Sequence record: NC_041917.1
Direction: 5' to 3' (one strand)
DNA length: 64,000 nt
In this document: positions 789 to 18,679 of the stretch, one piece after another
Position numbering within the stretch: the first letter of the stretch is position 1
Layout of the letters: each line of letters opens with the position of its first letter
The notes under the pieces: model-generated
What the model was told of the DNA's origin: nothing
The model's database searches: none
The model's input: the letters and a program-made list of their open reading frames with translations, nothing else
Translations under genes and position numbers: made by a program

Positions 789-982
789 GGCTAAACGCTT
801 TTTTGTCTCGATTTTCCATTAGTTCCCCTTCCGCGTCTAGTTAGTACTAGGCAGAATCGAAAGGCGTCTTTTCGTGTTGACAGAGCTATATTATCAAACG
901 GTGATCCATTATGCAAGGACTTTTTTCAATAAAAATAAATTTGACAAGTACAAACCGGATGTAGTACTATAATCACAACAAA

Positions 983-1007
983 GAGAAATTTGTAGCCCAC
1001 AGGGTGC
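983..1007 (+). repeat. promoter-locked element E1
   Basis: GAGAAAT-TTGTAG-CCCACAGGGTGC; promoter TTGACA 941/TACTAT 965-970. Confidence 0.85.
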
Positions 1008-1070
1008 CAAGATCCGCCTATTAGAAATTAAATGCGAATGAGAATCATTACCGATTATAGGTATATCTCC

Positions 1071-1096
1071 GCACCCTCTGGGGTATCCGATTTCTC
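1071..1096 (-). repeat. promoter-locked element E2
   Basis: Minus strand GAGAAAT-CGGAT-ACCCCAGAGGGTGC; minus promoter TTGCAT(1137-1132)-17-TATTAT(1114-1109). Confidence 0.9.
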
Positions 1097-1520
1097 TCGT
1101 CTGAAATAATAATATCAAAGTACGGTATAAGATGCAAGGACTTTTTTCGTTTTTGGTGAAAATAGTTTAGATCGTTGTATACGTATAAAGGAAAGGATTT
1201 AAAAGGCGAACAGGTGGAGCGGGGCGAAGGTATAGCAGTACTATATAAACGCCGTGTAATGGTTCCTATGCGTTATATGGGGGCATGTACACGTATAAAG
1301 GAAAGAAACCCTATAGCAGAACTATTTTTAAAAAGATTGCATAAAGTACTTGCAAAGGTTTACCGGTATGATAATATCTATCTCGTCAACACGACACCGC
1401 TCTTTAACAACTTGCTAGACAATTACTTGATAGTGATTCTTCTCTTTAGAAATAAGGAAAAAGAAAAACAAAAAAGTACTTGACGGCAAGAATGGAAAGT
1501 GTAGAATGTTGGTTATCGAA

Positions 1521-1651
1521 AGGCGGTAAGGTTCGCCGGATGATAGGAAAGGGTAACAGGGCAAAATAAAGTACTGTTGCAGTGTGAAGCCGAAAGTGCT
1601 CACATAGCCTTATAAAAAGCTTACTAACTGTAAGTGACCTATCTACCGCCT
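1521..1651 (+). ncRNA. candidate multibranch ncRNA
   Basis: Promoter TTGACG 1480/TAGAAT 1502; AGGCGGTA 1521-1528 and GATAGG 1542-1547 pair with contiguous CCTATC-TACCGCCT 1638-1651; three internal hairpins. Confidence 0.6.
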
Positions 1652-1785
1652 AACGATGTAACAAAAAAAAGTTTCTAAGAAGTTGAAAAAAGTACTTGAC
1701 GGATAGAAACGAAACGTAGTAATATGTGTTCAAGCCAAACGGCTTACCAAACAAACTAAACTAAACTTTTAAGAGGATTTAAATC

Positions 1786-2448
1786 ATGACTACTACCAAC
1801 AACGCAAAAGCTACCCGTATCACTCTGAACTCTATCGTTTTCGCCAATGCTCCAGTACTGGCAGCGGTTGCCGAAGGTGAACAGCCTCACAGCAAAGAAG
1901 TGATCGCACAGCACAAAACGCAGGTAGCGGAGTTTGTTGCAAATCAGGGTAAAGAACTGGCTGGCTACATTCTCGGCAAAGTTGAAACTCCTGACGTGAT
2001 TCTGGCGATTCTGAAAGAAGCCGCTAAACAGGTTCCAGCAGTACAGAAACAACTGGCAGAAGAAGCCGCGAAAGCCGAAGCCGAAGCCGCAGAACAGCGT
2101 AAAAAAGACGCTGAAGCCGCTGAAGCGAAACGCAAAGCTGATGAAGAAGCACTTCAGGCCGAAAAAGATAAAATGTTGAAAATCCTTACTGATAGCGGTC
2201 TGGATCTGGAAATCGCTCAAACAATGGTCGCCGCTGGCCTGAAAGCAAAAGCACCAGCGAACGCACCGAAAAACAGCTACGAACGTGTAGCGGTAACGGT
2301 GAACGGCAAAGGTTATGATGTTCCAGTACGTGGGAACATGAGCGAAGAACTCAAAGCACTGGTTGCTAAAGACGGCGGGGATCGTGAAGCGTTTATCAAC
2401 AAATACCGCAACGAACCAGCAGCAGCAGAAACCAACACCGCCGAATAA
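1786..2448 (+). CDS. coiled-coil protein with H-NS-like C-terminal half
   Basis: GAGGA SD, own promoter; KMLKILTDSGLD..GLKAKA..VNGKGYDVPVRGNMSEELKALVAKDGGDREAFI parallels H-NS as recalled from memory. Confidence 0.5.
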   Translation: MTTTNNAKATRITLNSIVFANAPVLAAVAEGEQPHSKEVIAQHKTQVAEFVANQGKELAGYILGKVETPDVILAILKEAAKQVPAVQKQLAEEAAKAEAEAAEQRKKDAEAAEAKRKADEEALQAEKDKMLKILTDSGLDLEIAQTMVAAGLKAKAPANAPKNSYERVAVTVNGKGYDVPVRGNMSEELKALVAKDGGDREAFINKYRNEPAAAETNTAE

Positions 2449-2468
2449 TATCACGGCGTAACGCGAAA

Positions 2469-2486
2469 GGGGGCTAACTAGCCCCC
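2469..2486 (+). terminator. GC hairpin after 1786 gene
   Basis: GGGGGC-TAACTA-GCCCCC; weak U-tract. Confidence 0.5.
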
Positions 2487-2578
2487 TAAGCCGTTCTAAC
2501 AGTACTGTAATGCAATCGGTTATAGTACTGTTAAAACGTCTTAGAAACGATCCTACGGCGTTCTACAATACCTTTTAA

Positions 2579-2863
2579 GTGAGAGTAAACGCTATGGAAC
2601 TAAAACCCATTACAGAGTTAATTGATCCTAAGACAAGGATCGCCCGAACGATGAACGCCGTTAGCAGTACTAAACAAGTATATAGCGGCTATCTGGCTTT
2701 TGTTGTAGATGGGAAGATCCTACAACGCAGGATCTATGATATGGCTTATAATAGCCTTTATGATTCCTGTATGTATATAGTACACCAGAAAGTTAACTAT
2801 GCCGTTAATGTATCAGCTAAACCAATTAGCGGGGCGTTTAACGTTGAATCCTTAACTGTATAA
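2579..2863 (+). CDS. hypothetical protein
   Basis: ORF track; start uncertain. Confidence 0.45.
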   Translation: MRVNAMELKPITELIDPKTRIARTMNAVSSTKQVYSGYLAFVVDGKILQRRIYDMAYNSLYDSCMYIVHQKVNYAVNVSAKPISGAFNVESLTV

Positions 2864-2933
2864 AATTTAGTTTTATTCATAAATATTAAAGCCGCATTGA
2901 TTGGCAATGCGGCTTTTTATTATGGATTAAATT

Positions 2934-3350
2934 ATGAGATACAAAAAACCTGAACCTGTACATATTCAAGGAAAATGCGTTATAGATGGATGTGACAATC
3001 TACAGGCAGTAGTTAAGAAAAACAAATACGGGGCAAGATGTAGCAAACATCTTAGGGAATCATGGCAATCTAATGATCCTGAAATTTTCAAGTATCTAAG
3101 CATTAAAAGATTATATGGATTAGAAAAAGAAGACTATATAAAACTACTTGAATCACAAGATTATAAGTGTTACATTTGTGGAACTCATCAAGATGATAGC
3201 AGTAGAGAAGTATTATATGTTGACCATGATCACAGTACTAATAAAATCCGTGGGTTATTATGTCATCATTGTAATACTGGTATAGGAAATTTTAAAGATG
3301 ATCCTGAACTCTTACAACGTGCTATAGACTATTTGAAAAAGAATTCATAA
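2934..3350 (+). CDS. endonuclease VII-family HNH endonuclease
   Basis: CYICG..VDHDH.T.KIRGLLCHHCNTGIGNFKDD signature. Confidence 0.85.
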   Translation: MRYKKPEPVHIQGKCVIDGCDNLQAVVKKNKYGARCSKHLRESWQSNDPEIFKYLSIKRLYGLEKEDYIKLLESQDYKCYICGTHQDDSSREVLYVDHDHSTNKIRGLLCHHCNTGIGNFKDDPELLQRAIDYLKKNS

Positions 3351-3415
3351 AGTACTTGCAATAAGTTTTAAGTACTGTAGAATATCCTATATCGAAACAA
3401 CACGGAGTAAATGAA

Positions 3416-3640
3416 ATGAGATTAAGTAAACTGTTAGCGGAGTTGTCGAAGGTTGCAGAACTTGCGAAAGTACACGGCAACAATGATCCTGATATTTCTT
3501 TTTGGCATGATGAAATTGAAACAATCGAACATTTAGAAGTATCATTCCCGCAAGATCTGGATGATGCCAGAATACCGACTAAAGTACTATCGGAAACTGA
3601 GAAAGGAAACTTTTCATTTAGATTAGTACTACCAGAATAA
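3416..3640 (+). CDS. hypothetical early protein
   Basis: Own promoter, GGAG SD. Confidence 0.75.
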   Translation: MRLSKLLAELSKVAELAKVHGNNDPDISFWHDEIETIEHLEVSFPQDLDDARIPTKVLSETEKGNFSFRLVLPE

Positions 3641-3699
3641 TCTTTACAAAAATGGGGTTGACAGCCAGCCCCAAAAAATGCAATAATACATACAAGCCA

Positions 3700-3725
3700 G
3701 AGAAATGGCGTAACCCACAGGGTGC
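3700..3725 (+). repeat. promoter-locked element E3
   Basis: GAGAAAT-GGCGTA-ACCCACAGGGTGC; TTGACA 3658. Confidence 0.85.
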
Positions 3726-3770
3726 GGAGATCCGTCCGTAGAAAATTCAGTACTTAATAGATATATCTCG

Positions 3771-3796
3771 GCACCCTCTAGGGTATCCGATTTCTC
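3771..3796 (-). repeat. promoter-locked element E4
   Basis: 3771-3800 is 29/30 identical to 1071-1100; minus promoter TTGCTT(3837-3832)-17-CATAAT(3814-3809). Confidence 0.9.
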
Positions 3797-3941
3797 TCGT
3801 ATGTAAGTATTATGCCAGTACTGAGAACATAAAGCAAGGGGTAAACGAAAATAAAAATTAAAATTCAAATGAAAAAGTACTTGCAATAAGTTTTAAGTAC
3901 TGTATACTTACCTTATCGAAACAAATGAAAGGATTTAAGAA

Positions 3942-4334
3942 ATGGAACGTAATGAGCAATTTAGATTAGTTCTTGAAGTACTGGAAAACATGCAAGCTTG
4001 TTTAGATGTTAATGATACATATGTGCGTATCAATGGCAAGAGTTTTAATCTTAATCGACATGCGGGGATCTGCTGGCATGTTCTCGCCTATACTCCTAAT
4101 TGTGATTATTCAGGTATTGGATTAGAATATCTTTCCCCGTTGTTTGTTAGTATGGGCTTACATCCTCATTATCCTGTAGAAATGCAGATCGTTAATGAGT
4201 TAGATCAAGCCCGTTGGATTCATTCAAAAGCAACAGATCAATATAATATCTTGGGCGAAGAAGGAAAGATCCGCCGTAAACTTTTAAAGGATTTGATTCA
4301 GTACTATAAAAAAGAGCTTGCAATTGAATCGTAA
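3942..4334 (+). CDS. hypothetical early protein
   Basis: Own promoter, AAGGA SD. Confidence 0.8.
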   Translation: MERNEQFRLVLEVLENMQACLDVNDTYVRINGKSFNLNRHAGICWHVLAYTPNCDYSGIGLEYLSPLFVSMGLHPHYPVEMQIVNELDQARWIHSKATDQYNILGEEGKIRRKLLKDLIQYYKKELAIES

Positions 4335-4373
4335 TACTGTATAATCTTTTATATCGAAACGGGAGATATAAAC

Positions 4374-4829
4374 ATGAATAGCAAACAATTTCAAGATGCA
4401 ACAAGAGAAGCCTTTTTGAAGTACTTCCCAAATGGCTACATTGGTATTTCTAAATTGTCAATGGGTGGCGGTTGTGGTATCTTCTGCGGGTTGATTGGTG
4501 ACATTAATGATGTGGGCGGGAAGATCCGCATGAATGACCCAATGACAGTACGGGCATTCATTCATGATAATTTTTCATTCAATGACGAAACAACTGATTT
4601 AGAAAATGTTGTTATCGAATTCGATGGATCTTGGATCTCAGTACTTCCAGACAATCCACACAATTATTGTCAATCTCACAAGGTGCCTAGTCGCAAGATT
4701 AACGCGGAGCCGTCAAAGGCATTAATTAATCTAGATAAGTACTTTAAACGCTTAAAGGATAGTGTAACCGAACAAGCTGGATTGAATCGTATTATTCAGC
4801 AAGAAAAGATCCCCGCAAAATATCTATAA
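4374..4829 (+). CDS. hypothetical early protein
   Basis: Own promoter, GGAG SD. Confidence 0.8.
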   Translation: MNSKQFQDATREAFLKYFPNGYIGISKLSMGGGCGIFCGLIGDINDVGGKIRMNDPMTVRAFIHDNFSFNDETTDLENVVIEFDGSWISVLPDNPHNYCQSHKVPSRKINAEPSKALINLDKYFKRLKDSVTEQAGLNRIIQQEKIPAKYL

Positions 4830-4904
4830 TATATTGTCAAAAGTACTTGCATTAAAGTAGCGAGTACTTTACAATAAGTTATCGTTAAGTGAGAGGATAA
4901 AGAA

Positions 4905-5039
4905 ATGTCAAAGATTGAAGCTTACAGAGCTGGACTGTATATGTTTACAGTACCGCCAGTAATAACCAATGCATGGAAAGAAGTTGATTGGATCAATTTT
5001 ATTGATTCTAATGGTAAATGGATGGTTCCTGTAGTATAA
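4905..5039 (+). CDS. small hypothetical protein (44 aa)
   Basis: GAGAGG SD, own promoter; not in ORF track. Confidence 0.6.
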   Translation: MSKIEAYRAGLYMFTVPPVITNAWKEVDWINFIDSNGKWMVPVV

Positions 5040-5059
5040 TTTTAATTGAGGGTTTTACT

Positions 5060-5464
5060 ATGTTTTTACATGTACGCGGTTTTACTGGTGGCGGTTTCTG
5101 CTTTATGATTGATGATAAAGCGGTATCAGTACAAGAAGCATTGATCCAGAATGGTGGACGTTTCCACAAGGCAACAATAAACGCATTGAACAGAAAGAAC
5201 CTTTTTAATGAGTCAGATTTAAAAGCCTTTGAAGAACTGGCAGAATCATTACATAAAGGTTTAACTCCTTGCTCCATTCGTCAAATCCTGCGTAATGATT
5301 ACGGGATCGACGTGTTAAAAACTGATTACCTTATGTTATCATCTTCTCAGGTTGAAGATCTTAAAACTGTTTATAAGTACGCACGTTATAAGGTTCCTAC
5401 TGGTTACGTATTGAAACATTCGCCAATGTACTACTTTTACAGGTATTTGAGCAACGTAAAATAA
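5060..5464 (+). CDS. hypothetical early protein
   Basis: GAGG SD; start moved to ATG 5060. Confidence 0.75.
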   Translation: MFLHVRGFTGGGFCFMIDDKAVSVQEALIQNGGRFHKATINALNRKNLFNESDLKAFEELAESLHKGLTPCSIRQILRNDYGIDVLKTDYLMLSSSQVEDLKTVYKYARYKVPTGYVLKHSPMYYFYRYLSNVK

Positions 5465-5519
5465 TTTAAAAAAGGGGTTGACTACGGTCAGCCCTTTGTA
5501 GTACTATAGTATCACTCCA

Positions 5520-5546
5520 GCGAAATGGACTAACCCTATAGGGTGC
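5520..5546 (+). repeat. promoter-locked element E5
   Basis: GCGAAAT-GGACTA-ACCCTATAGGGTGC; 5514-5592 identical to 15714-15792. Confidence 0.95.
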
Positions 5547-5653
5547 AGTACTGTACCTATAATAAAAATAATTAAAATTCAAATGAAAAAGTACTTGCAT
5601 TAAGTATTGAGTCATGTATAATCATTATATCGAAAGCAAACGAGGGTTTAACG

Positions 5654-5830
5654 ATGGATCATTTAATCGCATTACTTAATGCCTTTTGTATTAAACATGG
5701 GTTAGTACCTGCTAGTGCCGATGAAATGCTAATCGAGTATTTGGGTACTGAAAATCCAGATCCTGCAATTGTTTCATGGTTACAAGCTTATATTGTACTG
5801 TGGGACTGTACAAGTGATTTAGGTTTATAA
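5654..5830 (+). CDS. small hypothetical protein (58 aa)
   Basis: GAGG SD, own promoter. Confidence 0.65.
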   Translation: MDHLIALLNAFCIKHGLVPASADEMLIEYLGTENPDPAIVSWLQAYIVLWDCTSDLGL

Positions 5831-5902
5831 TTAAAATAGTACTTGCAATAATATGTGAGTACTGTATAATTCTTTATATCGAAAACAAACGAGGATTTTT
5901 AA

Positions 5903-6331
5903 ATGAGAACATGTAAAGAGTGTGGTAATGATTGCAAGTTAGATGTAAATGAAATCGTTAACCATTATAACGAAGATGGGAAGATTGATTTTGATTTAGA
6001 TGCGGATCATGTTGCAATTCCTGAATTAACTGACGCCGAAAGTAATATGCAAAATCCAGTACTACAAACGGCATTCAATTTTTCCGGTGATGTACCTTGC
6101 ATTAACTACGGGTTCAATTCTGGCGGTTATGAAAAATTCCAGTACTTTATTTGTGCTGATGGTGGTTGTTTAGGGATCGGGACTGTAATTAATGAGTTCC
6201 ATAAAGTGAACTTTAATGATCCTGATGATAAGCAATGGTATATCGTAGGGGTTGAAGTTAATTACGAAAATACCGAACTGGTAGACGATCACACAGGGGA
6301 TTATATACCAGCAGCGTACAGCGAAGACTAA
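5903..6331 (+). CDS. conserved phage hypothetical protein
   Basis: GAGGA SD; DGGCL..VNYENTEL.DDHTG.YIPAAY pattern familiar from phage hypotheticals. Confidence 0.8.
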   Translation: MRTCKECGNDCKLDVNEIVNHYNEDGKIDFDLDADHVAIPELTDAESNMQNPVLQTAFNFSGDVPCINYGFNSGGYEKFQYFICADGGCLGIGTVINEFHKVNFNDPDDKQWYIVGVEVNYENTELVDDHTGDYIPAAYSED

Positions 6332-6371
6332 ACAAAAGCAACGGGGATCTATGATCCCCTTTTGAGGTTAT

Positions 6372-6635
6372 ATGAATTTACATTATTGTACCAGAAAATT
6401 AGTTGTTGCTTTTGATTGTAGTTCTGATAAAATACATTGTGTAATATACAGAAAGGGAACACCACGCACAGATCACTGGAAAGTACTGCAATCCTATACA
6501 ATGCAACGTAAAGGGTTTAAGCACCTTGATAGCAGGACACAAAAGGCATGTTTACGGCAAGTACTTAAAGTTATGCGTAATCGTATTACACAGGCGTTAC
6601 ATGTTGCATTAACTACCAAGGATATGATAGAATGA
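6372..6635 (+). CDS. hypothetical protein
   Basis: GAGG SD. Confidence 0.7.
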   Translation: MNLHYCTRKLVVAFDCSSDKIHCVIYRKGTPRTDHWKVLQSYTMQRKGFKHLDSRTQKACLRQVLKVMRNRITQALHVALTTKDMIE

Positions 6636-6799
6636 AATATGTAATCTATTATGATCGCAGTACTAAAAGCTGGTGGGGGTACTGGATTGATGAAAATGAA
6701 AATCAGTTAGGTGAAGCTGTTTTTGAATATCAAAAAGAAGATTGCCTGATACTCTTAGGAGAAGTCAAGGAAAATCGTCGGAATTTAATTCAAAAATAA
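6632..6799 (+). CDS. small hypothetical protein (55 aa)
   Basis: ATGA overlap with upstream stop. Confidence 0.6.
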   Translation: MKYVIYYDRSTKSWWGYWIDENENQLGEAVFEYQKEDCLILLGEVKENRRNLIQK

Positions 6800-6853
6800 A
6801 TGAAAAAAGTACTTGCATTCATGTGAGTACTTTTATATAATACTTATATCGAA

Positions 6854-6880
6854 GCGAAATTCGAATTACCCACAGGGTGC
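6854..6880 (+). repeat. promoter-locked element E6
   Basis: GCGAAAT-TCGAATT-ACCCACAGGGTGC; TTGCAT 6813-17-TATAAT 6836. Confidence 0.9.
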
Positions 6881-7028
6881 GGAAGTATATCTATGAAAAA
6901 AAGAATTAAAATTTAAATGAAAAAGTACTTGCATTAGATCGTGGGTATGGTATTATAACTACATCGAGAGGCGGCAATCTCTTGATAATAAAATTAATCA
7001 AATAACTTTTAAGAGAGAGAGAAAGAAA

Positions 7029-7337
7029 ATGTCTAAAGCAAACGCGATAGTATCAATGATCCCTGCAATCCTTCCAATCGGTACTGTAGTAGTTCACAAT
7101 TACGGTGAGTTCACTCATGGTACTATTGTATCTCATGTTGCTGGTGATATGTATGAAGTATTCTTTCCTGTTGAGAACTGCCCACAAACTGCAAAGTACT
7201 TGACAGATGTTAATTCTCGTGTACGTAAAATTCGCTTAAATGCTGGTTTCTTTATCAGCCGCTTTAACTCACTTGCAGCAGTTAAGATCGCACAGAAGAA
7301 GTATAAAAAATCTGGTCTAAAACTGGAAAGCATTTAA
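7029..7337 (+). CDS. hypothetical protein, paralogue of 13449-13781
   Basis: Shared GT.VVHNY..F.HGTI and GFF.S motifs. Confidence 0.85.
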   Translation: MSKANAIVSMIPAILPIGTVVVHNYGEFTHGTIVSHVAGDMYEVFFPVENCPQTAKYLTDVNSRVRKIRLNAGFFISRFNSLAAVKIAQKKYKKSGLKLESI

Positions 7338-7486: not shown

Positions 7487-7496
7487 GAGGTTCAAA

Positions 7497-8086: not shown

Positions 8087-8365
8087 ATGAAAGCATACGA
8101 ACATAAGACCATGACAGTTGCGGATCTTATTGCTAAACTGGAAAGTACTTATCCGAACAAAAACGCCGTTATCGTTGCGGATCTATGGGACGAAGACGAT
8201 ATTCGTGAAGTAGCACAGGATATTAATATTCAGCTCGACCGCGAAGAATGTCGAGTAGTAGCGGCTTATCTGGATGATACCGCAGATAAGACAAATGGTT
8301 ATAATGATGATAACATTAAGTTAGCCATTTATCAAGTTATTAATTTGGGGCTTATTAATCCTTAA
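8087..8365 (+). CDS. hypothetical protein
   Basis: ORF track, GAG SD. Confidence 0.75.
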   Translation: MKAYEHKTMTVADLIAKLESTYPNKNAVIVADLWDEDDIREVAQDINIQLDREECRVVAAYLDDTADKTNGYNDDNIKLAIYQVINLGLINP

Positions 8366-8455
8366 CTATATTATCAAAAGTACTTGCAAATAGAAAGCGA
8401 GTACTTTATAATGAAGTTATTGAATCGGTACTTATTAACTAAGAGGAAGTATATC

Positions 8456-8659
8456 ATGGCTCAAAAAGATCGTCGTTACTCAATCGCAGCGGAGTTTACT
8501 GGTCACATCTCAGGTAAGAAGCGTCAAGTACTGCGTTTCTGTGGGGCGTGGGTATCGGATCATGCGACACGTCACGAAGCCGAACAAGAGATCGTGAAGT
8601 GGAAAGCCAGCGGTGAAGTGCCAGCGGTTCAATCACAGCGTGTGCTGGTGGAAGCGTAA
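8456..8659 (+). CDS. small conserved phage protein
   Basis: GAGGA SD; start moved to ATG 8456; YSIAAEFTG..VLRFCG. Confidence 0.75.
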   Translation: MAQKDRRYSIAAEFTGHISGKKRQVLRFCGAWVSDHATRHEAEQEIVKWKASGEVPAVQSQRVLVEA

Positions 8660-8735: not shown

Positions 8736-9035
8736 ATGAAATTTACAGTACAAGTCGAAGGGGTTGATCTAGTATCAGTCGTCGCAGCATTACAAGAAGC
8801 CGCTAGACTTATCGAAGATGGGAATACTTCTGGATTTGATCGCAATGAAGATGGGAATTTTTATTTTGTAGAAGGCGATCAGCACTTGTTTAGTACTGGT
8901 GAATCATGTACAATGCATACAGCCGTTTGTGAAATGGTGGAGCGTTTACATCAAGGCAATCATTATGATAATGATGAAGAACGCCAAGCTGATATTGATG
9001 TGATGAATAAATTACAAAAAGTAACAGGACGCTAA
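8736..9035 (+). CDS. hypothetical protein
   Basis: GAGAGG SD; start moved to ATG 8736. Confidence 0.75.
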   Translation: MKFTVQVEGVDLVSVVAALQEAARLIEDGNTSGFDRNEDGNFYFVEGDQHLFSTGESCTMHTAVCEMVERLHQGNHYDNDEERQADIDVMNKLQKVTGR

Positions 9036-9040
9036 ACAAC

Positions 9041-9070
9041 AAGTACTGGTGAAATATCCAGTACTGTTTT
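9041..9070 (+). terminator. intrinsic terminator
   Basis: AGTACTGG-TGAAATAT-CCAGTACT followed by T run. Confidence 0.7.
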
Positions 9071-9104
9071 TATATACAGCTTATTCTTTAATAGATACAT
9101 TTTC

Positions 9105-9131
9105 GCACCCTGTGGGTCAAAGACATTTCGC
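9105..9131 (-). repeat. promoter-locked element E7
   Basis: Minus strand GCGAAAT-GTCTTTG-ACCCACAGGGTGC; TTGACA(9173-9168)-17-TATTAT(9150-9145). Confidence 0.9.
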
Positions 9132-9261
9132 TGTCTATGAAGTAATAATACAGTACTTTGGTAATGGTGTCAAGGATTAAATTAAAATTAAAACGAAAAA
9201 AAGCACTTGTAATTATCATGAAGTACTGTATAATCTTTTATATCGAAACGGGAGAATTGAA

Positions 9262-9968: not shown

Positions 9969-10826
9969 ATGGGTAAGCATATTTTTTGGGGTTGTTTAGG
10001 TCTGATTGGTTTACTCGCCATTGGTGCGTTGTTGGGTTCGTTCTATACGGTAGACCAACAGGATCGCGGTGTAGTACTGACTAACGGTAAAATTACAGAA
10101 ATTGCCGAGCCTGGTCTGAACTGGAAAAAGCCATTCGTTACATCGGTGATTGAAATTCCGGTAACTGGTCAGAACAAAAGTTATCCGAACCTTAAAGCGT
10201 ACAGCCGCGATCAGCAGCCAGCAGATATGTCGGTTTCCGTATCGTTCGCCGTTCCAGCGGGTAAAGTGGGGGATCTGTATAGTACTTTCGGGACTATCGA
10301 AAACCTTACAGCACGTGTAATTGACCGTCAAGTACCGCAAGCAGTTGAAAACGTATTTGGTCAGTTTAACGCGATTACCGCCGTACAGGATCGTAATAAG
10401 TTAGTTACTAACTTAAACATTGCAATTAAAAAGGCGATGGAAAACTATCCGGTAATTATTGAATCGGTACAGGTTGAAAACTTATCATTCAGCCCTGCAT
10501 ATGAAAAATCAATTGAAGAACGTATGCAAGCCGAGATCGCAGTAACTAAACGTGAGCAGGACTTTGCACAGGCTAAGATCTCAGCGTCAATCACGGTTGC
10601 CAACGCACAGGCCGAAGCTGATAGCCAGCTTGCTAAGGCAACAGCAGCAGCGAAAGCGACACGCCTACAGGGTGAAGCTGATGCAGCAGCAATTAAGGCG
10701 AAGTCTGACGCACTTAGCAATAATCCGCAACTCGTACAGTTGGCAGCAGTTGACAAGTGGGATGGCGTACTACCTACACAAATGGTTCCAGGTTCTACCG
10801 TTCCATTCGTGAATCTCAACAAGTAA
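9969..10826 (+). CDS. SPFH/band-7 (prohibitin-like) protein
   Basis: N-terminal TM, YTVDQQDRGVV..G..EPGLNWK.PF, coiled-coil, KWDG.LP tail. Confidence 0.9.
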   Translation: MGKHIFWGCLGLIGLLAIGALLGSFYTVDQQDRGVVLTNGKITEIAEPGLNWKKPFVTSVIEIPVTGQNKSYPNLKAYSRDQQPADMSVSVSFAVPAGKVGDLYSTFGTIENLTARVIDRQVPQAVENVFGQFNAITAVQDRNKLVTNLNIAIKKAMENYPVIIESVQVENLSFSPAYEKSIEERMQAEIAVTKREQDFAQAKISASITVANAQAEADSQLAKATAAAKATRLQGEADAAAIKAKSDALSNNPQLVQLAAVDKWDGVLPTQMVPGSTVPFVNLNK

Positions 10827-10958
10827 TTGTATCACAAAAAGCCTCGCAAAGTCGAGGCTTTTTTATTATGAACACAATTAAAATTCAAATGTAAAAGTAC
10901 TTGTATTATATGGCTGATGCTGTTATAGTACTTATATCGAAGCACAGGAGATAATCAA

Positions 10959-12255: not shown

Positions 12256-12307
12256 CATAATCCCCTAAATACGTATATAATAACTTATACGATTAGGGGA
12301 TTTTATT

Positions 12308-12775
12308 ATGCCTGGAAAATTCAGATCCAAGAGTGGTGCTACACTAGCAGGACACTCTGATAAATGGAGCGATGAGAATCGTTCAGCAAGTAGCCATGAA
12401 GCGGGGCAAGGCAGTAAAGGCAGTCGCAATCAAGGTACTGGCATTCAAGGAAAAGTTAACGCAATGCCATCACAGGGAATAGATACTTCCCGCATGGATA
12501 AATCAGAAAAGCTAAAGTACTTTAATTCATTAGGGTTACTACAGCCAGAACAAAAGCAAGAACTTTCTATAAAAACATGGCCTGATACTTTACGTAAAGT
12601 ATTCAAAGACGAGCCAGTATATATCAAAGACATTACCGCCGCTTTAAAATCAGTACCGCAAGCAAACTACCCGCAAGCAGTACAAGCAGGATTCAACGCC
12701 ACACAAGAGACAATGAATCAAACCGATGATGTTTATGACATATACGCCGCTATCATGCAAGCCATTCAGGGTTAA
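12308..12775 (+). CDS. hypothetical protein with Gly/Ser-rich N-terminus
   Basis: Own promoter and SD. Confidence 0.75.
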   Translation: MPGKFRSKSGATLAGHSDKWSDENRSASSHEAGQGSKGSRNQGTGIQGKVNAMPSQGIDTSRMDKSEKLKYFNSLGLLQPEQKQELSIKTWPDTLRKVFKDEPVYIKDITAALKSVPQANYPQAVQAGFNATQETMNQTDDVYDIYAAIMQAIQG

Positions 12776-12841
12776 AAAAAGGGTTGACTTAGGTCAGCCC
12801 TTTTGCTATTGTATCAGTACTTAAACAAAAGGAACAAAATC

Positions 12842-13192
12842 ATGAGAAAACTTCTTTTAGCTACATTACTCTTTGCTGGTGCTGTAAACGCACAAACTTA
12901 TGTTTGCAACACTTACACAGTATATCAGGGTGTTGGGAATGGTCAGTACAATAAAATTGATAACAGTACGCCATCATTCAGTACTATCATCGAAACATCA
13001 CGCGATGTAATTAAAGTGTATGTTAAAGGTGAAGAAAGTACTTATACCGAATTCTGGAAAGATTACAATGATTATCGTAATGATACCGGATTGATTAAAC
13101 AGTCTGGTAATGAATTCGAAATCAAAACAGCGATTGAAGATCCTACAGGAACCGCATACATTCCAGTAAAAATAGAATACCATTGCAAATAA
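12842..13192 (+). CDS. exported protein with signal peptide
   Basis: MRKLLLATLLFAGAVNA; AAGGA SD. Confidence 0.75.
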   Translation: MRKLLLATLLFAGAVNAQTYVCNTYTVYQGVGNGQYNKIDNSTPSFSTIIETSRDVIKVYVKGEESTYTEFWKDYNDYRNDTGLIKQSGNEFEIKTAIEDPTGTAYIPVKIEYHCK

Positions 13193-13247
13193 TTAAAATA
13201 AAGACTTGACTCGTTCAGGTCTTTTTTTGTATACTATATTCAATCCA

Positions 13248-13274
13248 GCGAAATGGACTAACCCTATAGGGTAC
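13248..13274 (+). repeat. promoter-locked element E8
   Basis: GCGAAAT-GGACTA-ACCCTATAGGGTAC; TTGACT 13206/TATACT 13230. Confidence 0.9.
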
Positions 13275-13448
13275 ATAAATGTATCTATTAGATATAGTAC
13301 TGGATGTTTGTACAGTACTAAAAGAATTTAAAAATAAGATGAAAAAGTCCTTGCATTAAAATACAGATTTGCTATTATAACTACATCGAGAGGCGGCAAT
13401 CTCTTGGTAAACAAACTTTAAAACATTTTAATTGAGAGAGAAATAAAC

Positions 13449-13781
13449 ATGGCTAACTTCAACGCACAGAACAAAGTAGACCGTACTCCTGCTCACACTT
13501 TAGAAGTAGGTACAATCGTAGTACACAACTACACTACATTCTGTCATGGTACTATTACTGGCTATGCTCCAGATGGTGCTTACCATGTTTATTTCCCTAC
13601 TGATATGGCACCTAACATGCCTAAGTATCAAGCTAACACAGTAGAAGCCACGCAAAACCGTACCCGTACATTGACGGCTGGATCTGGTTTCTTTGTAAGC
13701 AAACACAAGTCATTCGCGTCTATTCGTGAACTGCAACGCAAGTACCGCCAGAAAGGTGCTGCACTGGAAATGTTAGCATAA
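13449..13781 (+). CDS. hypothetical protein, paralogue of 7029-7337
   Basis: Shared motifs and identical 34-nt leader. Confidence 0.85.
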   Translation: MANFNAQNKVDRTPAHTLEVGTIVVHNYTTFCHGTITGYAPDGAYHVYFPTDMAPNMPKYQANTVEATQNRTRTLTAGSGFFVSKHKSFASIRELQRKYRQKGAALEMLA

Positions 13782-13853
13782 CAAATTAAAAAGGGGTTGA
13801 CAATGTTCAGCCCCTTTGTTATAGTATCAGTACTTAAACGAGAGGATAACAAT

Positions 13854-14075
13854 ATGTTTACTGCATTAGAATCTTTGGTTAGAGAAGAAGTTTCGGAAGA
13901 AGAAGTAAAAGCAGGTTTAAAACTGCGTGATCTTTGCATCCAGAATGATCTGGATATTCCCGAAGTACTAATGACGTTGCATTACTTCAATGGTATTGAA
14001 CCAAAATTAATCATTGACAAAGTATCAGCGTTAAACACGCCGTTAATTGAAAATGCAATGCATGTACTGCATTAA
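13854..14075 (+). CDS. hypothetical protein
   Basis: GAGAGG SD; start moved to ATG 13854. Confidence 0.75.
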   Translation: MFTALESLVREEVSEEEVKAGLKLRDLCIQNDLDIPEVLMTLHYFNGIEPKLIIDKVSALNTPLIENAMHVLH

Positions 14076-14197
14076 TGAAAACTATTATTAATGCAATCAT
14101 TCTATCATTTATAATGATACTAGTACAACGTCAAACATCCTTCCCACTGCTTTGTATTATAGCAGTACTGACAGGATTGTTAATTTATAAATGGTAA
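14075..14197 (+). CDS. 40-aa membrane peptide
   Basis: TAATG coupling; hydrophobic. Confidence 0.5.
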   Translation: MKTIINAIILSFIMILVQRQTSFPLLCIIAVLTGLLIYKW

Positions 14198-14248
14198 AAA
14201 TAAAGGCTTGACACGTTCAAGCCTTTTTGTTATAGTACTATCACTCCA

Positions 14249-14275
14249 GCGAAATGGACTAACCCTATAGGGTGT
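14249..14275 (+). repeat. promoter-locked element E9
   Basis: GCGAAAT-GGACTA-ACCCTATAGGGTGT; TTGACA 14208-17-TATAGT 14231. Confidence 0.9.
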
Positions 14276-14404
14276 AGTACTGTATCTATAATAAAATAAT
14301 TAAAATTTAAATGAAAAAAGTACTTGCATTAAGTTTTAAGTACTGTATAATGTTTTACATAGGGTAAGCAATACCGCTTACCCATATTAAGTGAGAGAAT
14401 CAAA

Positions 14405-14986
14405 ATGAAATTTACTGAACTGAATGCTGAACAACAAGCTAGAGCAATTGAAGTACATCGTGATATTAATTTGGATGATAATAGTATCTGGTGCGACTTC
14501 ATTCAAGAGCGTTTTCATTCAGAACTAAATGAGTTTGGTTTTGAAGAAGTCGAATCACGTTATAGTGGTTTTTGTTCACAAGGTGACGGGGCAAGCTTTA
14601 CCGCTGATAACGTTGATATTGAAAAGTTCTTGCGTAAAACGAAACGCTGGACACACTATCGTTCATTACATGAATTCATTCGCATTAATGATATTACATG
14701 TATAGTTGTACGTGATAACGGTTCGCGTTATGTTCACTACAACACAACCGAAGCCACGTTAAGCGGTAACTGGTATATAGATCTTAGCCCAAAACAAGAA
14801 TCATTGTATACTGAATTAGAAAAAGAGATCGATGATTTTATAACGGAGAAAGGTCAAGAATATTATTCAGAACTTGACAAGCATTATTATCATCTATTGG
14901 AAGATGAACAAGTCAAGGAAACAATAATAGCTAATGAAATGGAATTTGAAGAAGATCCACGCGAAAGCTGCGTAACTTATATCTAA
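14405..14986 (+). CDS. conserved phage/MGE protein with YSGFCSQGDGASF motif
   Basis: Motif recalled from a family often auto-annotated as a TA antitoxin. Confidence 0.6.
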   Translation: MKFTELNAEQQARAIEVHRDINLDDNSIWCDFIQERFHSELNEFGFEEVESRYSGFCSQGDGASFTADNVDIEKFLRKTKRWTHYRSLHEFIRINDITCIVVRDNGSRYVHYNTTEATLSGNWYIDLSPKQESLYTELEKEIDDFITEKGQEYYSELDKHYYHLLEDEQVKETIIANEMEFEEDPRESCVTYI

Positions 14987-15051
14987 ATTCAAAATAGGGA
15001 TTGACAAGTTCAATCCCTTTTGATACTCTATCAGTACTGAAACGGAGTTAT

Positions 15052-15174
15052 ATGAAAAAGAAATATATAGTTCTGTACAGTACTTTAAACGAAGCTTACA
15101 TTCAAGGCCAAAAAATGGAACGCATTGTTCAAGTACTGATTGTTATTTTATTCATTTTGTACTGGATACTGTAA
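15052..15174 (+). CDS. 40-aa peptide with C-terminal TM
   Basis: Own promoter, GGAG SD. Confidence 0.5.
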   Translation: MKKKYIVLYSTLNEAYIQGQKMERIVQVLIVILFILYWIL

Positions 15175-15324
15175 TGAGAATAATCAAGTACTACAATGGT
15201 GTAAGTATTAAAATGATTGATACCGATCATTTTGTAGTACAGAAAGGCCGTATAAAAATTACTTGCAAACGTGCCGTAATTGCATTATACTATTTCTATC
15301 AACTAATCATTAAGTGAGAAGAAA

Positions 15325-15660
15325 ATGAGAAAACCAAACGTAGAATTACTTTGCGATTCACATCATGGCGTTTACATTCCGCAAATTATGATCCATCGTC
15401 TTAAAGACAATGGTTGGCGTAATATTCCACTTAATGCCGTGGAAGTACTTTCGCATCCAGATAATGAAGATTATTGGGATACATGGAATCAAGTACTTGA
15501 CAATGCTGAATGGCATGATGAATACACTACACAAGTCTTTAAGCTACATCATGATGGTGACTTGTGGGCGTATTGTGAAGCGTCAATGTCGCCTACAGAG
15601 TATCATAACATGTTCGGTGAATATCCTGAATGGTTCAATGAAGAACTCGAAGAAGCTTAA
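15325..15660 (+). CDS. conserved phage hypothetical protein
   Basis: DSHHGVYIPQ..YWDTW..VLDNA..DGDLW. Confidence 0.8.
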   Translation: MRKPNVELLCDSHHGVYIPQIMIHRLKDNGWRNIPLNAVEVLSHPDNEDYWDTWNQVLDNAEWHDEYTTQVFKLHHDGDLWAYCEASMSPTEYHNMFGEYPEWFNEELEEA

Positions 15661-15719
15661 AAGAATTACAAAAAGTACTTGACTACGGTCAGGTACTTTG
15701 TTATAGTTATATTACTCCA

Positions 15720-15746
15720 GCGAAATGGACTAACCCTATAGGGTGC
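15720..15746 (+). repeat. promoter-locked element E10
   Basis: Identical to E5; TTGACT 15679-17-TATAGT 15702. Confidence 0.95.
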
Positions 15747-15873
15747 AGTACTGTACCTATAATAAAAATAATTAAAATTCAAATGAAAAAGTCCTTGCAT
15801 TAGAATATCAGTACTGTATAATCTTTTACATAGACAGGAGATAGTCTCTTGTCAAAGCAAAGGAATTACAATC

Positions 15874-16221
15874 ATGATTAGCATCCAATCTACTCTTAAT
15901 GACCTGATCGCACATCGTGAACGCCTGTTGAATGAATCCATCAAACATGCGTCAACTATTGGTTATGTGTATATTAGACCATTTAACTTAGGCTTGCTGG
16001 TGGAACAATTACCCGAAGGTGTACAAGTCGGGCCAGCGATGGGCGATGAACTCCCTACTATCTTCTCTGAACGTATGGCTAATGCCAATCTTTCTCTTGT
16101 AAAGAGTATTGCAAAAGAGCCAGAAGTCAAATTTGTTTCTATCCAAAAATATATTTCAGATTCACTTGAAAGTACTGAAAACACTATCAAGATGATTCAA
16201 TCATTACAACCAGAAATTTAA
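15874..16221 (+). CDS. hypothetical protein
   Basis: Own promoter, hairpin leader, AAGGA SD. Confidence 0.8.
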   Translation: MISIQSTLNDLIAHRERLLNESIKHASTIGYVYIRPFNLGLLVEQLPEGVQVGPAMGDELPTIFSERMANANLSLVKSIAKEPEVKFVSIQKYISDSLESTENTIKMIQSLQPEI

Positions 16222-16276
16222 TTAAAAATAGGGGTTGACGAGAGTCAGCCCTTTTTGCTATAATAATTCCAATGAA

Positions 16277-16303
16277 GCGAAATTCACTAACCCTATAGGG
16301 TGC
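16277..16303 (+). repeat. promoter-locked element E11
   Basis: GCGAAAT-TCACTA-ACCCTATAGGGTGC; TTGACG 16235/TATAAT 16259. Confidence 0.9.
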
Positions 16304-16438
16304 GGAAGTGTATCTATATCTTTTAGTACTGTATATCTGTACAGCAAAAATAAATTAAAAATAAGATGAAAAACAGCTTGCAATGTAATGCTGGTGGATG
16401 TATTATATCTATATCGAAACAGCAACGGGGTACAAGAA

Positions 16439-16678
16439 ATGGCTAATAAAGAATTTGAATTTAAAGTTAGAAAATGGTCAGATACTAATGCTAGACCGTT
16501 TGATGTAGTACTGTTGGACTATCTCAAAAACAATCAGCATTATCAACCTAACGTTGAATTCAGTACTGAAGCCTTAGCCAATCAACATTTGGTTTCGTTG
16601 CAAAATTCAGTACTTAACAATCCTGATAGTGTTAACTTTATTCGTGATCATTGGCCTGTTGATGGTGGCATCGAATAA
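16439..16678 (+). CDS. hypothetical protein
   Basis: Start moved to ATG 16439. Confidence 0.7.
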   Translation: MANKEFEFKVRKWSDTNARPFDVVLLDYLKNNQHYQPNVEFSTEALANQHLVSLQNSVLNNPDSVNFIRDHWPVDGGIE

Positions 16679-16761
16679 AAATTTAAACGTAAAAAGTACT
16701 TGACTACATCAGTTGAGTACTTTAAAATAGAATCTTAATCAACGCAATAGGAAACGAAATC

Positions 16762-17655
16762 ATGAAAATGTACAAAGGTATCGCAGGTAAAGCAATCAAA
16801 GAAAACCGTCCACTGCTAAGATCAGAACTGGAACTGGTTGTTCCTTCTATCTTTTCAAGTACTGGACACGAATCACGTTCAGCACGGTTCGCACCTGTTG
16901 CAACAATTGACGTTGTTGACCGCTTAGCAAAGGAAGGTTATCAACCATTCTTTGCGATTCAGTCAAATGTACGTGACGAATCTAAACGTGAATTTACTAA
17001 ACATATGCTGCGTTTCCGTCAGCATGATGGCAAAACATCCGGCGAATCTAATGAGATCATTCTCGTTAACGCCAACGATGGCACAAGTGCCTATCAATTG
17101 ATGGCTGGTCAATTCCGTTTCGTTTGTGCTAATGGTCTAGTTATGGGCAATATGAAGCATAACACAAAGATCTATCACAAAGGTAACAACATCATGGATG
17201 ACGTTATCGAGGGCGTTTACACTGTAGTAAAAGACTTTGATAACATCGAACGTTACAAACATGAAATGCAACGTATCCAGCTTAATGATGTTGAGCGTAA
17301 GACATTCGCCACCGCTGGCTACCTCATGAAAGAAGGTTTGCCAGAAAGTGGTTCACTGGATGACGCTGTTTATAACCCATTACAGTTGTTATCACGCAAT
17401 GGCCTGAACAGCCTTGACCAGTACGATAACAGCTTATACAGTACTTTTAACACTGTACAGCAGCACTTAATTAACGGCGGTCAACGCTCATTCATGGAAG
17501 ATCGTAACGGTCGCACCCGCCGCCGTTCAAGCCGTGGAGTTACTAATATCAATAAGAACATTGACATTAATAGTAACTTATGGCAACTCGCTACTGCACT
17601 GGTAGAAAAGAATACTAAGGTTGTGCATGATATTGTTGACGCACAATTATCATAA
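16762..17655 (+). CDS. DUF932/DUF945-family protein
   Basis: KHMLRFR..EIILVNANDGTSAYQLMAGQFRFVCANGLV. Confidence 0.85.
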   Translation: MKMYKGIAGKAIKENRPLLRSELELVVPSIFSSTGHESRSARFAPVATIDVVDRLAKEGYQPFFAIQSNVRDESKREFTKHMLRFRQHDGKTSGESNEIILVNANDGTSAYQLMAGQFRFVCANGLVMGNMKHNTKIYHKGNNIMDDVIEGVYTVVKDFDNIERYKHEMQRIQLNDVERKTFATAGYLMKEGLPESGSLDDAVYNPLQLLSRNGLNSLDQYDNSLYSTFNTVQQHLINGGQRSFMEDRNGRTRRRSSRGVTNINKNIDINSNLWQLATALVEKNTKVVHDIVDAQLS

Positions 17656-17743
17656 TAATTAAGTACTAAAATCATGTAAGGGGTTGACACTTGTCAGCCC
17701 CTTTTGCTATACTTCTTTTACACCAACCGGAAAGGAAAAACAA

Positions 17744-18091
17744 ATGTTAGATGTATATGTAAGATCAGATTTAGTTTCAAATGGTCGCAATGAGTTCGGT
17801 ACTGAACAAGAAAAAACAGAGTACTATATCATTGCTGAATCATCAAGCGGTCAACGTATTAGATTAGATAGTGTATCAATTGTTAATAGAGAATACACTG
17901 ATTCACAATGTACTGAGTACTTAGAACGTATCGTTACTAAAATTAATAATCATTTAGCTGGTGGCGGAAAATTAAATCTAGATTACTGGTACGAAATTGA
18001 TCCTTGCTATGGTTCACAACGTTACATTGATTTAGATAGTACTGGTTACTTCTATAAGCGTGAGAAACGCGAAGATTCTTATAAAAATTAA
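17744..18091 (+). CDS. hypothetical protein
   Basis: AAGGA SD; promoter/leader duplicated at 18097. Confidence 0.75.
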   Translation: MLDVYVRSDLVSNGRNEFGTEQEKTEYYIIAESSSGQRIRLDSVSIVNREYTDSQCTEYLERIVTKINNHLAGGGKLNLDYWYEIDPCYGSQRYIDLDSTGYFYKREKREDSYKN

Positions 18092-18158
18092 TACTAAGGG
18101 GTTGACAATAGTCAGCCCCTTTTGATATACTTCTTTTACACCAACAAAGGAAAGTATT

Positions 18159-18356
18159 ATGACTAGACAAGAAATAATTAAAGCGGCTAACAAAGTACTG
18201 TCATACAACCATCTCGAAATGATGGAAGCTATGGAAAGAGTACTAGGCACGTTTGGCGAAGATAATAAAGATGAATTCGCCGCTGTCTATGATGAAGTAC
18301 AGGATATTTTATATCCTCATGGTACTGGTGAAGATGCAGTATACTGCGAAAATTAA
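18159..18356 (+). CDS. hypothetical protein
   Basis: Own promoter, AAGGA SD. Confidence 0.75.
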   Translation: MTRQEIIKAANKVLSYNHLEMMEAMERVLGTFGEDNKDEFAAVYDEVQDILYPHGTGEDAVYCEN

Positions 18357-18417
18357 TATTTGACAACCGCTGTCAGTACTGATATACTGACAGCATATTA
18401 AACGAGAGGATACAATC

Positions 18418-18597
18418 ATGGTACAAGTAGATATGACTGAATTGCGTAAACGCTGGTATGATCTGGCACGTGCGGGTACTGCGATCACTGGTGATAACAG
18501 AACGCTATTCAATACACTGGATGGCTGGCAGCGTCAAGAACTAAAGAATGCATATGTTCAGGGCATGACTGATGAAGTTCAGACATGGGATGAATAA
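18418..18597 (+). CDS. small hypothetical protein (59 aa)
   Basis: GAGAGG SD, own promoter. Confidence 0.65.
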   Translation: MVQVDMTELRKRWYDLARAGTAITGDNRTLFNTLDGWQRQELKNAYVQGMTDEVQTWDE

Positions 18598-18652
18598 TTA
18601 AAAAGAAAGGCTTGACTTCGGTTGAGCCTTTTGTTATAGTACTATCAATGCA

Positions 18653-18679
18653 GCGAAATGCACTAACCCTATAGGGTGC
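18653..18679 (+). repeat. promoter-locked element E12
   Basis: GCGAAAT-GCACTA-ACCCTATAGGGTGC; TTGACT 18612-17-TATAGT 18635. Confidence 0.9.

Follow-up and report, generated by a model that had tools for sequence, protein, structure and literature searches.

The first 64,000 nucleotides (nt) of the Serratia phage BF genome (record NC_041917.1; identical at 100% by megablast to positions 1–64000 of KY630187), hereafter the window, contain 12 copies of a short promoter-locked module that is very probably a functional, transcribed RNA structure. BF, a jumbo myovirus of the Rak2-like group, belongs to the genus Eneladusvirus and has a genome of 357,154 base pairs (bp); the module, which is common to at least five phage genera, appears from its sequence to be an undescribed structured RNA family of ~50 nt in Rak2-like jumbo phages. 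A sequence-only reading of the window had noticed these copies and proposed a promoter-locked, non-coding element serving as a small RNA, a decoy or an RNA polymerase-modifying system. That observation is confirmed as real. Its general reading as a transcribed RNA element is supported by covariation in the first hairpin (H1), by G·U pairs of a third hairpin (H3) that exist only on the sense strand and by conserved spacing to the −10 box, whereas its specific models fared poorly and nothing supports modification of RNA polymerase.

A regular-expression scan and the pattern GAAA-N5-10-CCC-N3-4-GGGTR located 12 sites in the window and no others, compared with 0.03 expected from dinucleotide-preserving shuffles. 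Counted from the G of GAAAT, these lie at 985, 3702, 5522, 6856, 13250, 14251, 15722, 16279 and 18655 on the plus strand and at 9129, 3794 and 1094 on the minus strand; we number them E1 to E12 by position. A covariance model built from 22 copies recovered the same 12 sites (E 1e-13 to 1e-19), as the sequence-only reading had counted, with none past 19 kilobases (kb). All are confined to 0.97–18.7 kb, 70–4100 bp apart, within an early stretch of 34–41% G+C. The portions of BF scanned with the model were the window and the last 40 kb of the genome, and no match was found at 19–64 kb or in those last 40 kb. The trailing T(A/G)TA(C/T)CTAT, earlier said to follow most copies, follows nine; E1, E3 and E12 instead have CCGCCT, CCGTCC and CCGCCC.

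Every copy has its own promoter, with a −35 box of TTGAC(A/T/G) or TTGC(A/T)T, a spacer of 17–18 nt and a TAtaaT-like −10 box, and an A-rich tract lies upstream of the promoter in all 12 copies and in relatives. The motif's first G falls 12 nt past the −10 box in 11 copies and 13 nt past it in E7, as inspection of the letters had indicated, and the orientation of the module is fixed to that of the promoter in every copy. Across an alignment of 31 copies from five genera, each with 60 nt of upstream sequence, the TTG of the −35 box and the A and T of the −10 box are invariant, and a near-invariant C-A occupies the expected −1/+1 positions, seven nt past the −10 box. H1 starts at +2 or +3, leaving at most two unpaired nt at the 5′ end of the predicted RNA. 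Loss of the −10 spacing in homologous genomes had been named in advance as a result that would refute the element; the spacing survives in five other genera.

From its predicted C-A start, the module consists of at most two free nt, the H1 hairpin of 4–5 bp with a purine-rich loop, ~3 nt, and a near-invariant core, RCCC-N3-4-GGGUG(C/G)-NRRRRU-(G/C)YRYCY. Two-sided compensatory changes occur at all four H1 pairs, and the three inner pairs are never unpaired among 55 distinct sequences, with stems of CCA/UGG, GCG/CGC, CAG/CUG, GAG/CUC, GAC/GUC and others. In an alignment of 56 sequences, which was fitted to the model and therefore leans toward structure, 92.6% of H1 cells are paired, and sliding the partner column lowers this to 35–54%. 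The H1 loop is a GNGAAA hexaloop in BF-like phages and AGAUAA, GAGAAC or another sequence in RaK2 and PBECO4. In a check for pseudoknots, the loop was complementary to the 3′ segment in PBECO4 and RaK2 (AGAUA with UAUCU) and not in BF-type copies.

Within the core, GGGU has two alternative partners, the upstream RCCC (forming H2) and the downstream (G/C)YRYCY (forming H3). H2 is paired at all four positions in each of the 55 sequences in which the core was correctly placed (one more was mis-anchored by the script); at least ten loop sequences of 3 or 4 nt occur, along with two double compensations, ACCU/AGGU and ACUC/GAGU. H3, which consists mostly of G·U pairs, is paired at six of six positions in 33 sequences and at five of six in 20 (92% overall), and its C-G pair in BF is swapped to G-C in XbC2 and Kaldavass. 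RNAalifold chose H1 with H3 when given the BF copies alone, and folding of single sequences was divided between H2 and H3. Because the G·U pairs exist only on the sense strand and orientation is tied to the promoter, the structure belongs to the transcript.

Two further interpretations of the core were rejected. A leader peptide in the xTG-TAT-CTA frame after GGGUG would have a usable start codon in only some copies and would stop after three codons in most. A second promoter inside the module, with the palindrome as −35 box and TAYCTAT as −10 box, does not fit XbC2 and Kaldavass, which have CCGTCCAAAA at that place and yet keep the H3 pairing.

A blastn search with one unit matched 54 phage records, all but one of them large Rak2-like phages, with hosts in Erwinia, Yersinia, Escherichia, Salmonella, Klebsiella, Cronobacter, Pectobacterium and 'Xanthomonas'. 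The sole outlier, Vibrio phage VH1_2019, is a weak partial match over 21% of the query. At E ≤ 0.001 the covariance model found 11 copies in the first 24.7 kb of Yersinia phage fHe-Yen9-03, nine in XbC2, eight in Kaldavass, seven in RaK2 and nine in PBECO4, with a few additional weaker matches up to E = 1; Klebsiella phage Muenster has eight copies, and pEa_SNUABM_50 has 12 that are syntenic with those of BF. Density in these relatives is 8–12 matches per ~20 kb. All eight Muenster matches fall within its PhageTerm-predicted terminal repeat (1–20030), with zero matches at 20–37.8 kb, and by analogy we infer that the BF copies mark its own terminal-repeat early region. Among viral contigs found with a strict pattern, sizes were 345–371 kb apart from one of 109 kb and three of <7 kb, and each contained several model matches. 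Annotated among the ORFan genes of the Muenster region are a YeeU-like antitoxin and a YafQ-like RNase toxin (3055–3666 and 16393–16641), as would suit a set of genes for host takeover or counter-defence surrounding the modules.

No copy was found in the first 26 kb of PA5oct, a distant Pseudomonas relative. RNA-seq has identified two highly expressed non-coding RNAs in the PA5oct terminal repeat, at 8263–8498 and 21951–22401 (PMC7318152); neither matches the module, and this group of phages may more widely carry non-coding RNAs in the terminal repeat. An origin of the module in the host was rejected: blastn returned no match in 5,426 Escherichia coli genomes, and the strict pattern gave 11 scattered single matches in 596 gigabases of bacterial genomes, approximately the chance number, with none in Enterobacterales and no promoter upstream of the best one (a Neisseria metagenome-assembled genome). 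The module is absent from the literature searched, in which its motif strings were found in no paper and no transcriptome of a Rak2-like enterobacterial phage was found; the promoters listed in the CBB paper are all RpoD-like with UP elements, and the RaK2 and Eneladusvirus papers do not discuss promoters.

Rfam 15 yielded no match at gathering score in the 64 kb. At E ≤ 10, the only overlap with a copy was the plant-microRNA model MIR842 (3684–3812; 21 bits, E 4.5, for a gathering score of 85), a weak match that arises because of the long E3/E4 inverted repeat. Other sub-threshold matches, to the rimP leader (35 bits), the rnk leader (34 bits) and Phe/Leu leaders, fall on intergenic terminator-like hairpins (10776–10894 and 2818–2925) and are probably chance fits to the shape of a hairpin followed by a U run. 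No tRNA or tmRNA genes were found in the window.

In the KY630187 annotation, the first 19.5 kb contain 41 small plus-strand genes, nearly all hypothetical, and no regulatory or RNA features; a terminator-like hairpin lies at the end of almost all genes there. A sense copy in BF is preceded by the stop codon of the previous gene, ~58 nt, an AT-rich tract, a hairpin that contains the −35 box, a T run and the −10 box, and is followed by an AT tract, a second promoter (AAAAGTACTTGCA...TATAAT), a short 5′ untranslated region (often headed by a hairpin), a ribosome-binding site and ATG. We refer to the promoter of the module as P1 and to the second one as P2. From a sense copy to the next start codon is 109–801 nt, and a separate promoter always intervenes before any gene, immediately and of P2 type for eight of nine copies and ~500 nt on after E1. 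The earlier remarks that no open reading frame follows a copy, and that a second promoter does, are correct as descriptions. P1-type promoters with the hairpin-embedded TTGAC also occur without a module, at 12783, 13797, 17684 and 18102, where they directly abut a ribosome-binding site and gene; because these drive genes directly, the module looks like an optional add-on upstream of a unit that is already complete.

Seven of the sense units stand singly on the plus strand. E5 (5478–5566) has its −35 box, TTGACT, within a terminator-like hairpin, a −10 box TACTAT at 5502–5507 and the module at 5509–5566; its P2 (5587–5632) precedes BF_0009. E6 (6813–6900) has the AGTACT-flanked promoter type, with −35 TTGCAT at 6813–6818, −10 TATAAT at 6836–6841 and module at 6843–6900, and P2 at 6921–6966 before BF_0013. 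In the next four the −35 box is enclosed by a hairpin followed by a T run: E8 (13206–13294; TTGACT in a terminator-like hairpin at 13200–13224, −10 TATACT at 13230–13235, module 13237–13294), with P2 at 13343–13388 before BF_0029; E9 (14208–14295; TTGACA in a hairpin at 14202–14226, −10 TATAGT at 14231–14236, module 14238–14295), with P2 at 14316–14361 before BF_0031; E10 (15679–15766; TTGACT in a hairpin at 15672–15699, −10 TATAGT at 15702–15707, module 15709–15766), with P2 at 15787–15832 before BF_0034; and E11 (16235–16323; TTGACG in a hairpin at 16230–16253, −10 TATAAT at 16259–16264, module 16266–16323). The last, E12 (18612–18699), has −35 TTGACT at 18612–18617, −10 TATAGT at 18635–18640 and module at 18642–18699, followed by P2 at 18717–18762 before BF_0040.

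The remaining plus-strand copies each face a minus-strand copy 60–110 bp away. E1 (941–1027, plus strand; −35 TTGACA 941–946, −10 TACTAT 965–970, module 972–1027) faces E2 (1051–1137, minus strand; −35 TTGCAT 1137–1132, −10 TATTAT 1114–1109, module 1107–1051). E3 (3658–3745, plus strand; −35 TTGACA 3658–3663 within the hairpin GGGGTTGACAGCCAGCCCC, −10 box 3682–3687, module 3689–3745) converges with E4 (3751–3837, minus strand; −35 TTGCTT 3837–3832, −10 CATAAT 3814–3809, module 3807–3751); between this pair and BF_0005 lies a P2 at 3873–3918 with an AT-rich upstream tract, AAAAGTACTTGCA and TATACT. Equivalent pairs exist in every relative, including XbC2, Kaldavass, RaK2 and PBECO4. Either transcript of a pair folds as an imperfect hairpin of ~120 nt (−47 and −49 kcal/mol, z −3.5 and −4.3), the first values being those of the E4 transcript. 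Each transcript of these pairs (941–1137 and 3658–3837) would contain its partner in antisense, and the two RNAs would also be fully complementary.

E7 (9034–9173, minus strand) stands alone, with −35 TTGACA at 9173–9168, −10 TATTAT at 9150–9145, module at 9142–9085, a conserved linker, a terminator hairpin at 9065–9042 and a U-rich tail. Its transcript runs into this bidirectional terminator, giving a predicted RNA of ~105 nt. Equivalent solitary minus-strand copies are likewise followed within ~20 nt by a hairpin and U run in XbC2, Kaldavass, RaK2 (two) and Muenster, where two of these terminators are independently annotated; in the PBECO4 copy the tail after the hairpin is only weakly U-rich. 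The distance from module to terminator is 15–21 nt in BF, RaK2 and Muenster. When the unit was aligned from four phages, it was conserved from the −35 box to the end of the terminator, with linker and hairpin 100% identical, and similarity was lost beyond. Judged by this pattern of conservation, the E7-type unit is a discrete, orthologous candidate small-RNA gene.

We tentatively favor, at somewhat less than even confidence, the view that the module acts autonomously, as a tag or decoy that binds protein, over that of a leader in cis. On this reading, it would be transcribed from +1 of immediate-early promoters that use host sigma70 in the terminal-repeat region, and its 5′-terminal H1 would, by analogy with known stabilizers, shield the triphosphate end from RppH and from 5′-end-dependent attack by RNase E. 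Because the core sequence is invariant while loops, stems and flanks vary, the core would be a docking site for a protein common to these phages or their hosts. The 8–12 strong promoters of each terminal repeat, twice that number per injected genome, would fire together and flood the cell in the first minutes, either with terminated small RNAs of ~100 nt (solitary minus-strand copies and some sense copies of RaK2 and PBECO4) or with longer early transcripts that have the module as their 5′ domain (BF sense copies). Promoter firing, 5′-end protection, protein binding and action in trans are steps that we infer. A more specific version, which we consider unlikely, is that ~24 copies per injected genome (12 per repeat) act as immediate-early decoys and titrate a host RNA-binding factor before any phage protein exists; the target would be an enzyme of RNA decay or a defence protein that is RNA-guided or cleaves RNA.

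Between this autonomous role and a 5′ leader acting in cis the sequence evidence is divided: the conserved gene-less E7 unit and the obligatory second promoter favor autonomy, and the many sense copies without terminators favor a leader. As a leader, the module would serve only the transcript that it heads: H1 would stabilize P1 mRNAs, the core would be bound by a host or phage factor timing decay, shut-off or processing of immediate-early mRNAs, each gene would have a regulated long isoform (from P1) and an unregulated short one (from P2), and minus-strand copies would be by-products or local antisense regulators. We regard this as possible but rather doubtful. It agrees with the nine of 12 BF copies that are co-directional with the genes and with the placement of H1, which has no more than two nt before it at the predicted 5′ end, as in known 5′ stabilizer hairpins; P2 transcripts likewise begin with unrelated hairpins, as if 5′ hairpins were a general habit of the region. 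Against it stand the full second promoter that always precedes the gene, the module-free P1-type promoters that drive genes directly, the solitary gene-less minus-strand copies with their own terminator that are kept across genera, and some sense copies of RaK2 and PBECO4 with a hairpin and U run that overlap the next promoter and lie ahead of its start.

Several results nevertheless weigh against the autonomous role. No terminator-like hairpin was found within 220 nt of seven of nine sense copies in BF and seven of eight in fHe-Yen9-03 (14 of 17 together). The three flagged hits are unconvincing terminators, being the complement of a partner or weak hairpins at or beyond the next gene; in BF, E3 is followed by the complement of E4, and E5 by a weak hairpin that lies within the coding sequence of the next gene. 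Because such a hairpin is missing from seven of the nine, BF sense transcripts probably continue into the next gene, and most copies are physically 5′ leaders of mRNAs, which fits a role in cis equally well. H2 and H3, each of them weak, exclude one another, which leaves the functional fold ambiguous, and the sequence of the H1 loop varies between genera. Start sites, RNA ends and abundance in all these phages are predictions, and Pfam gave no informative domains for 10 genes adjoining modules.

The remaining explanations, raised in part by the sequence-only reading, fared poorly in the comparisons made. Processive antitermination of the HK022 put or lambda nut type, with the nascent module staying on RNA polymerase either alone or with a phage protein on H1, would let polymerases started at P1 read through the downstream terminator and promoter hairpins. 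The two small hairpins directly after an early promoter, the variable hairpin beside an invariant element (reminiscent of boxB/boxA logic) and the terminator-like hairpins at nearly every gene end would suit it, yet an unfiltered cmsearch of HK022 at 22–32 kb (put location assumed from gene order) reached only 7 bits (E 3.5), and no boxA string (CGCTCTTTA-like) occurs within or beside any copy. Conserved terminators follow the solitary copies, where read-through would generate antisense RNA across upstream genes, and 12 copies would be superfluous for a processive modification; we judge this very unlikely. Slightly less probable again is an element acting as DNA: an operator or cruciform at ACCCTATAGGGT, an R-loop origin formed by the promoter and AT tract, or a PeSL-style recombination substrate. 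In its favor, ACCCTATAGGGT is a perfect 12-bp palindrome in seven BF copies, an AT-rich tract lies downstream, and the P1 hairpin and promoter are PeSL-like. A palindrome bound by a protein dimer on double-stranded DNA is, however, a poor fit because the loop has many sequences and varies between 3 and 4 nt in length, the two changed stems are compensated and H1 keeps its pairing while its sequence changes. Read from the opposite strand, the G·U pairs of H3 would become C·A mismatches; the module never departs from the orientation of its promoter, and the core is invariant across genera while its flanks diverge.

Least probable of all is an anti-defence mimic, either a spacer-less type I-F CRISPR RNA (Racr-like) that titrates Cas6f/Cas7f or a ToxI-like decoy for ToxN. 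A strong promoter lies directly upstream, as for solitary Racr repeats (PMC10651486), the small G+C hairpin has UAUA or ACA loops, E11 aligns with handle plus repeat at z 3.5, and GAAAU, which contains the reported ToxN cleavage motif AAAU, is present in all 12 BF copies. Against the I-F repeat, the sequence of which was confirmed in annotated CRISPR arrays of E. coli, the other 11 copies score at the level of shuffled sequence (z −0.7 to 1.7), and the E11 match, TTCACT, is the covarying 3′ arm of H1, which differs in every other copy. The base of the stem is A-U rather than the C-G pair altered in the test of a RacrIF1 variant (PMC10651486). For ToxI, Tandem Repeats Finder reported no tandem array of ~36 nt in the window at 1–20 kb, and GAAAU is not conserved across the family, being found in one of seven RaK2, none of nine PBECO4, five of nine XbC2 and four of eight Kaldavass copies. 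H1 covariation has no role in either mimic.

Shuffling of the PeSL type between BF and pEa_SNUABM_50 was also considered but is not supported. In this one genome pair all 12 copies are syntenic, and the two indels (BF 2851–3348 and ~3857–3918) are not at modules, the first being away from them and the second adjoining the E4 promoter. The ~0.5 kb at 2851–3348, which carries BF_0003 and starts beside a strong bidirectional terminator (2888–2916), corresponds to ~66 bp in the Erwinia phage.

Phage early regions are usually read as promoters plus small proteins of unknown function. Here, the most conserved item of a 20-kb host-takeover region is an RNA structure rather than a protein, kept across at least five genera in 8–12 copies at the first transcribed bases of the strongest promoters while the surrounding genes turn over. 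Action in trans would make the module a multi-copy small-RNA system that is at work before any gene of the phage is translated; action in cis would make it a new mark distinguishing immediate-early transcripts. As a decoy, it would be a protein-free first line of host takeover across a clade of Enterobacterales jumbo phages. Either way, the module offers a concrete, easily mutated handle on the start of infection in Rak2-like jumbo phages, and the covariance model provides an annotation marker for the terminal-repeat early region of their genomes.

The early region has other recurrent features. P2 transcripts also start with hairpins of unrelated sequence (6966–6995, 13388–13415, 14361–14392, 15832–15862 and 19073–19092), two of which have the loop GCAATACCGC in common, and 5′-terminal hairpins seem to be a general feature of BF early transcripts. 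P2-type promoters contain two AGTACT sites as an inverted repeat flanking the −35 box and spacer. This palindrome occurs 286 times in the 64 kb (for example, at 22, 208 and 216) compared with 17.9 ± 3.6 expected, a 16-fold excess, and is not limited to promoters and terminators but also lies inside genes. Other palindromes of identical composition have ordinary counts (ACTAGT 9, TGTACA 30), and GGTACC, GATATC and CTTAAG do not occur in the window. Positions 1–1785 are gene-free in the annotation and yet hold the E1/E2 pair, many AGTACT sites and P2-type promoters at 1472 and 1688 (plus strand) and at 1145 and 924 (minus strand), the latter two directed at the left end of the record; this stretch may contain small genes or RNAs that the annotation lacks.

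Among known systems, the 5′ stem-loops of ompA type stabilize E. coli mRNAs, the 5′ ends of which are attacked by RppH and RNase E. The module resembles them in having a hairpin that starts within ~2 nt of the 5′ end and keeps its pairing while the stem varies in sequence. To our knowledge, such stabilizers need no conserved sequence, whereas the BF module adds an invariant core, a loop conserved within a genus and units without a downstream gene. Lambda oop and P22 sar are small antisense or regulatory phage RNAs with their own promoter and terminator, and the E7-type unit is similarly an RNA gene of ~105 nt from promoter to terminator on the strand opposite the genes; unlike them, its RNA overlaps only the terminator of the upstream gene and not the coding sequence, and its 5′ domain is common to 11 paralogues. 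With lambda nut (boxA plus boxB) and HK022 put, the module shares promoter-proximal nascent hairpins in early transcripts and a variable hairpin next to a conserved element. It differs in having no sequence or model similarity, in its location at the extreme 5′ end, in its 12 copies rather than two and in the terminators after solitary copies. The loop of lambda boxB is a GNRA-like pentaloop bound by N, and that of BF H1 is a GNGAAA hexaloop, with other sequences in RaK2 and PBECO4. Racr elements are also small phage RNA hairpins directly downstream of a strong promoter, possibly acting by dosage (PMC10651486), and the BF promoter, ending 12–13 nt upstream, lies inside the 250 bp used to define them. 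Their defining criterion of high identity to a CRISPR repeat (PMC10651486) contrasts with the chance-level identity of the BF module.

The closest likeness is to the PeSL cassettes of T4-like phages (Arbiol et al. 2010, PMC2839356; Comeau et al. 2014, PMC4122927), which combine an AT-rich tract, a stem-loop able to terminate the upstream gene and a near-consensus sigma70 early promoter, and which are repeated many times among small ORFan early genes. Both P1 and P2 promoters of BF are of this design. A PeSL ends in a Shine-Dalgarno sequence and start codon, an arrangement found only at the module-free P1 promoters of BF, whereas P1 otherwise leads into a covarying RNA of ~50 nt and then a second promoter. 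In addition, the stem-loop contains the −35 box in BF and lies upstream of it in PeSL, and the indels between BF and pEa_SNUABM_50 are not found at modules (in this one genome pair, with one indel adjoining the E4 promoter). The promoter/terminator composite is PeSL-like, the transcribed module with its tandem second promoter is outside the PeSL definition, and no known RNA family matches. We rate the module as a phage family of promoter-proximal structured RNAs or small RNAs on PeSL-like cassettes rather than the CRISPR/ToxIN mimic that had been proposed.

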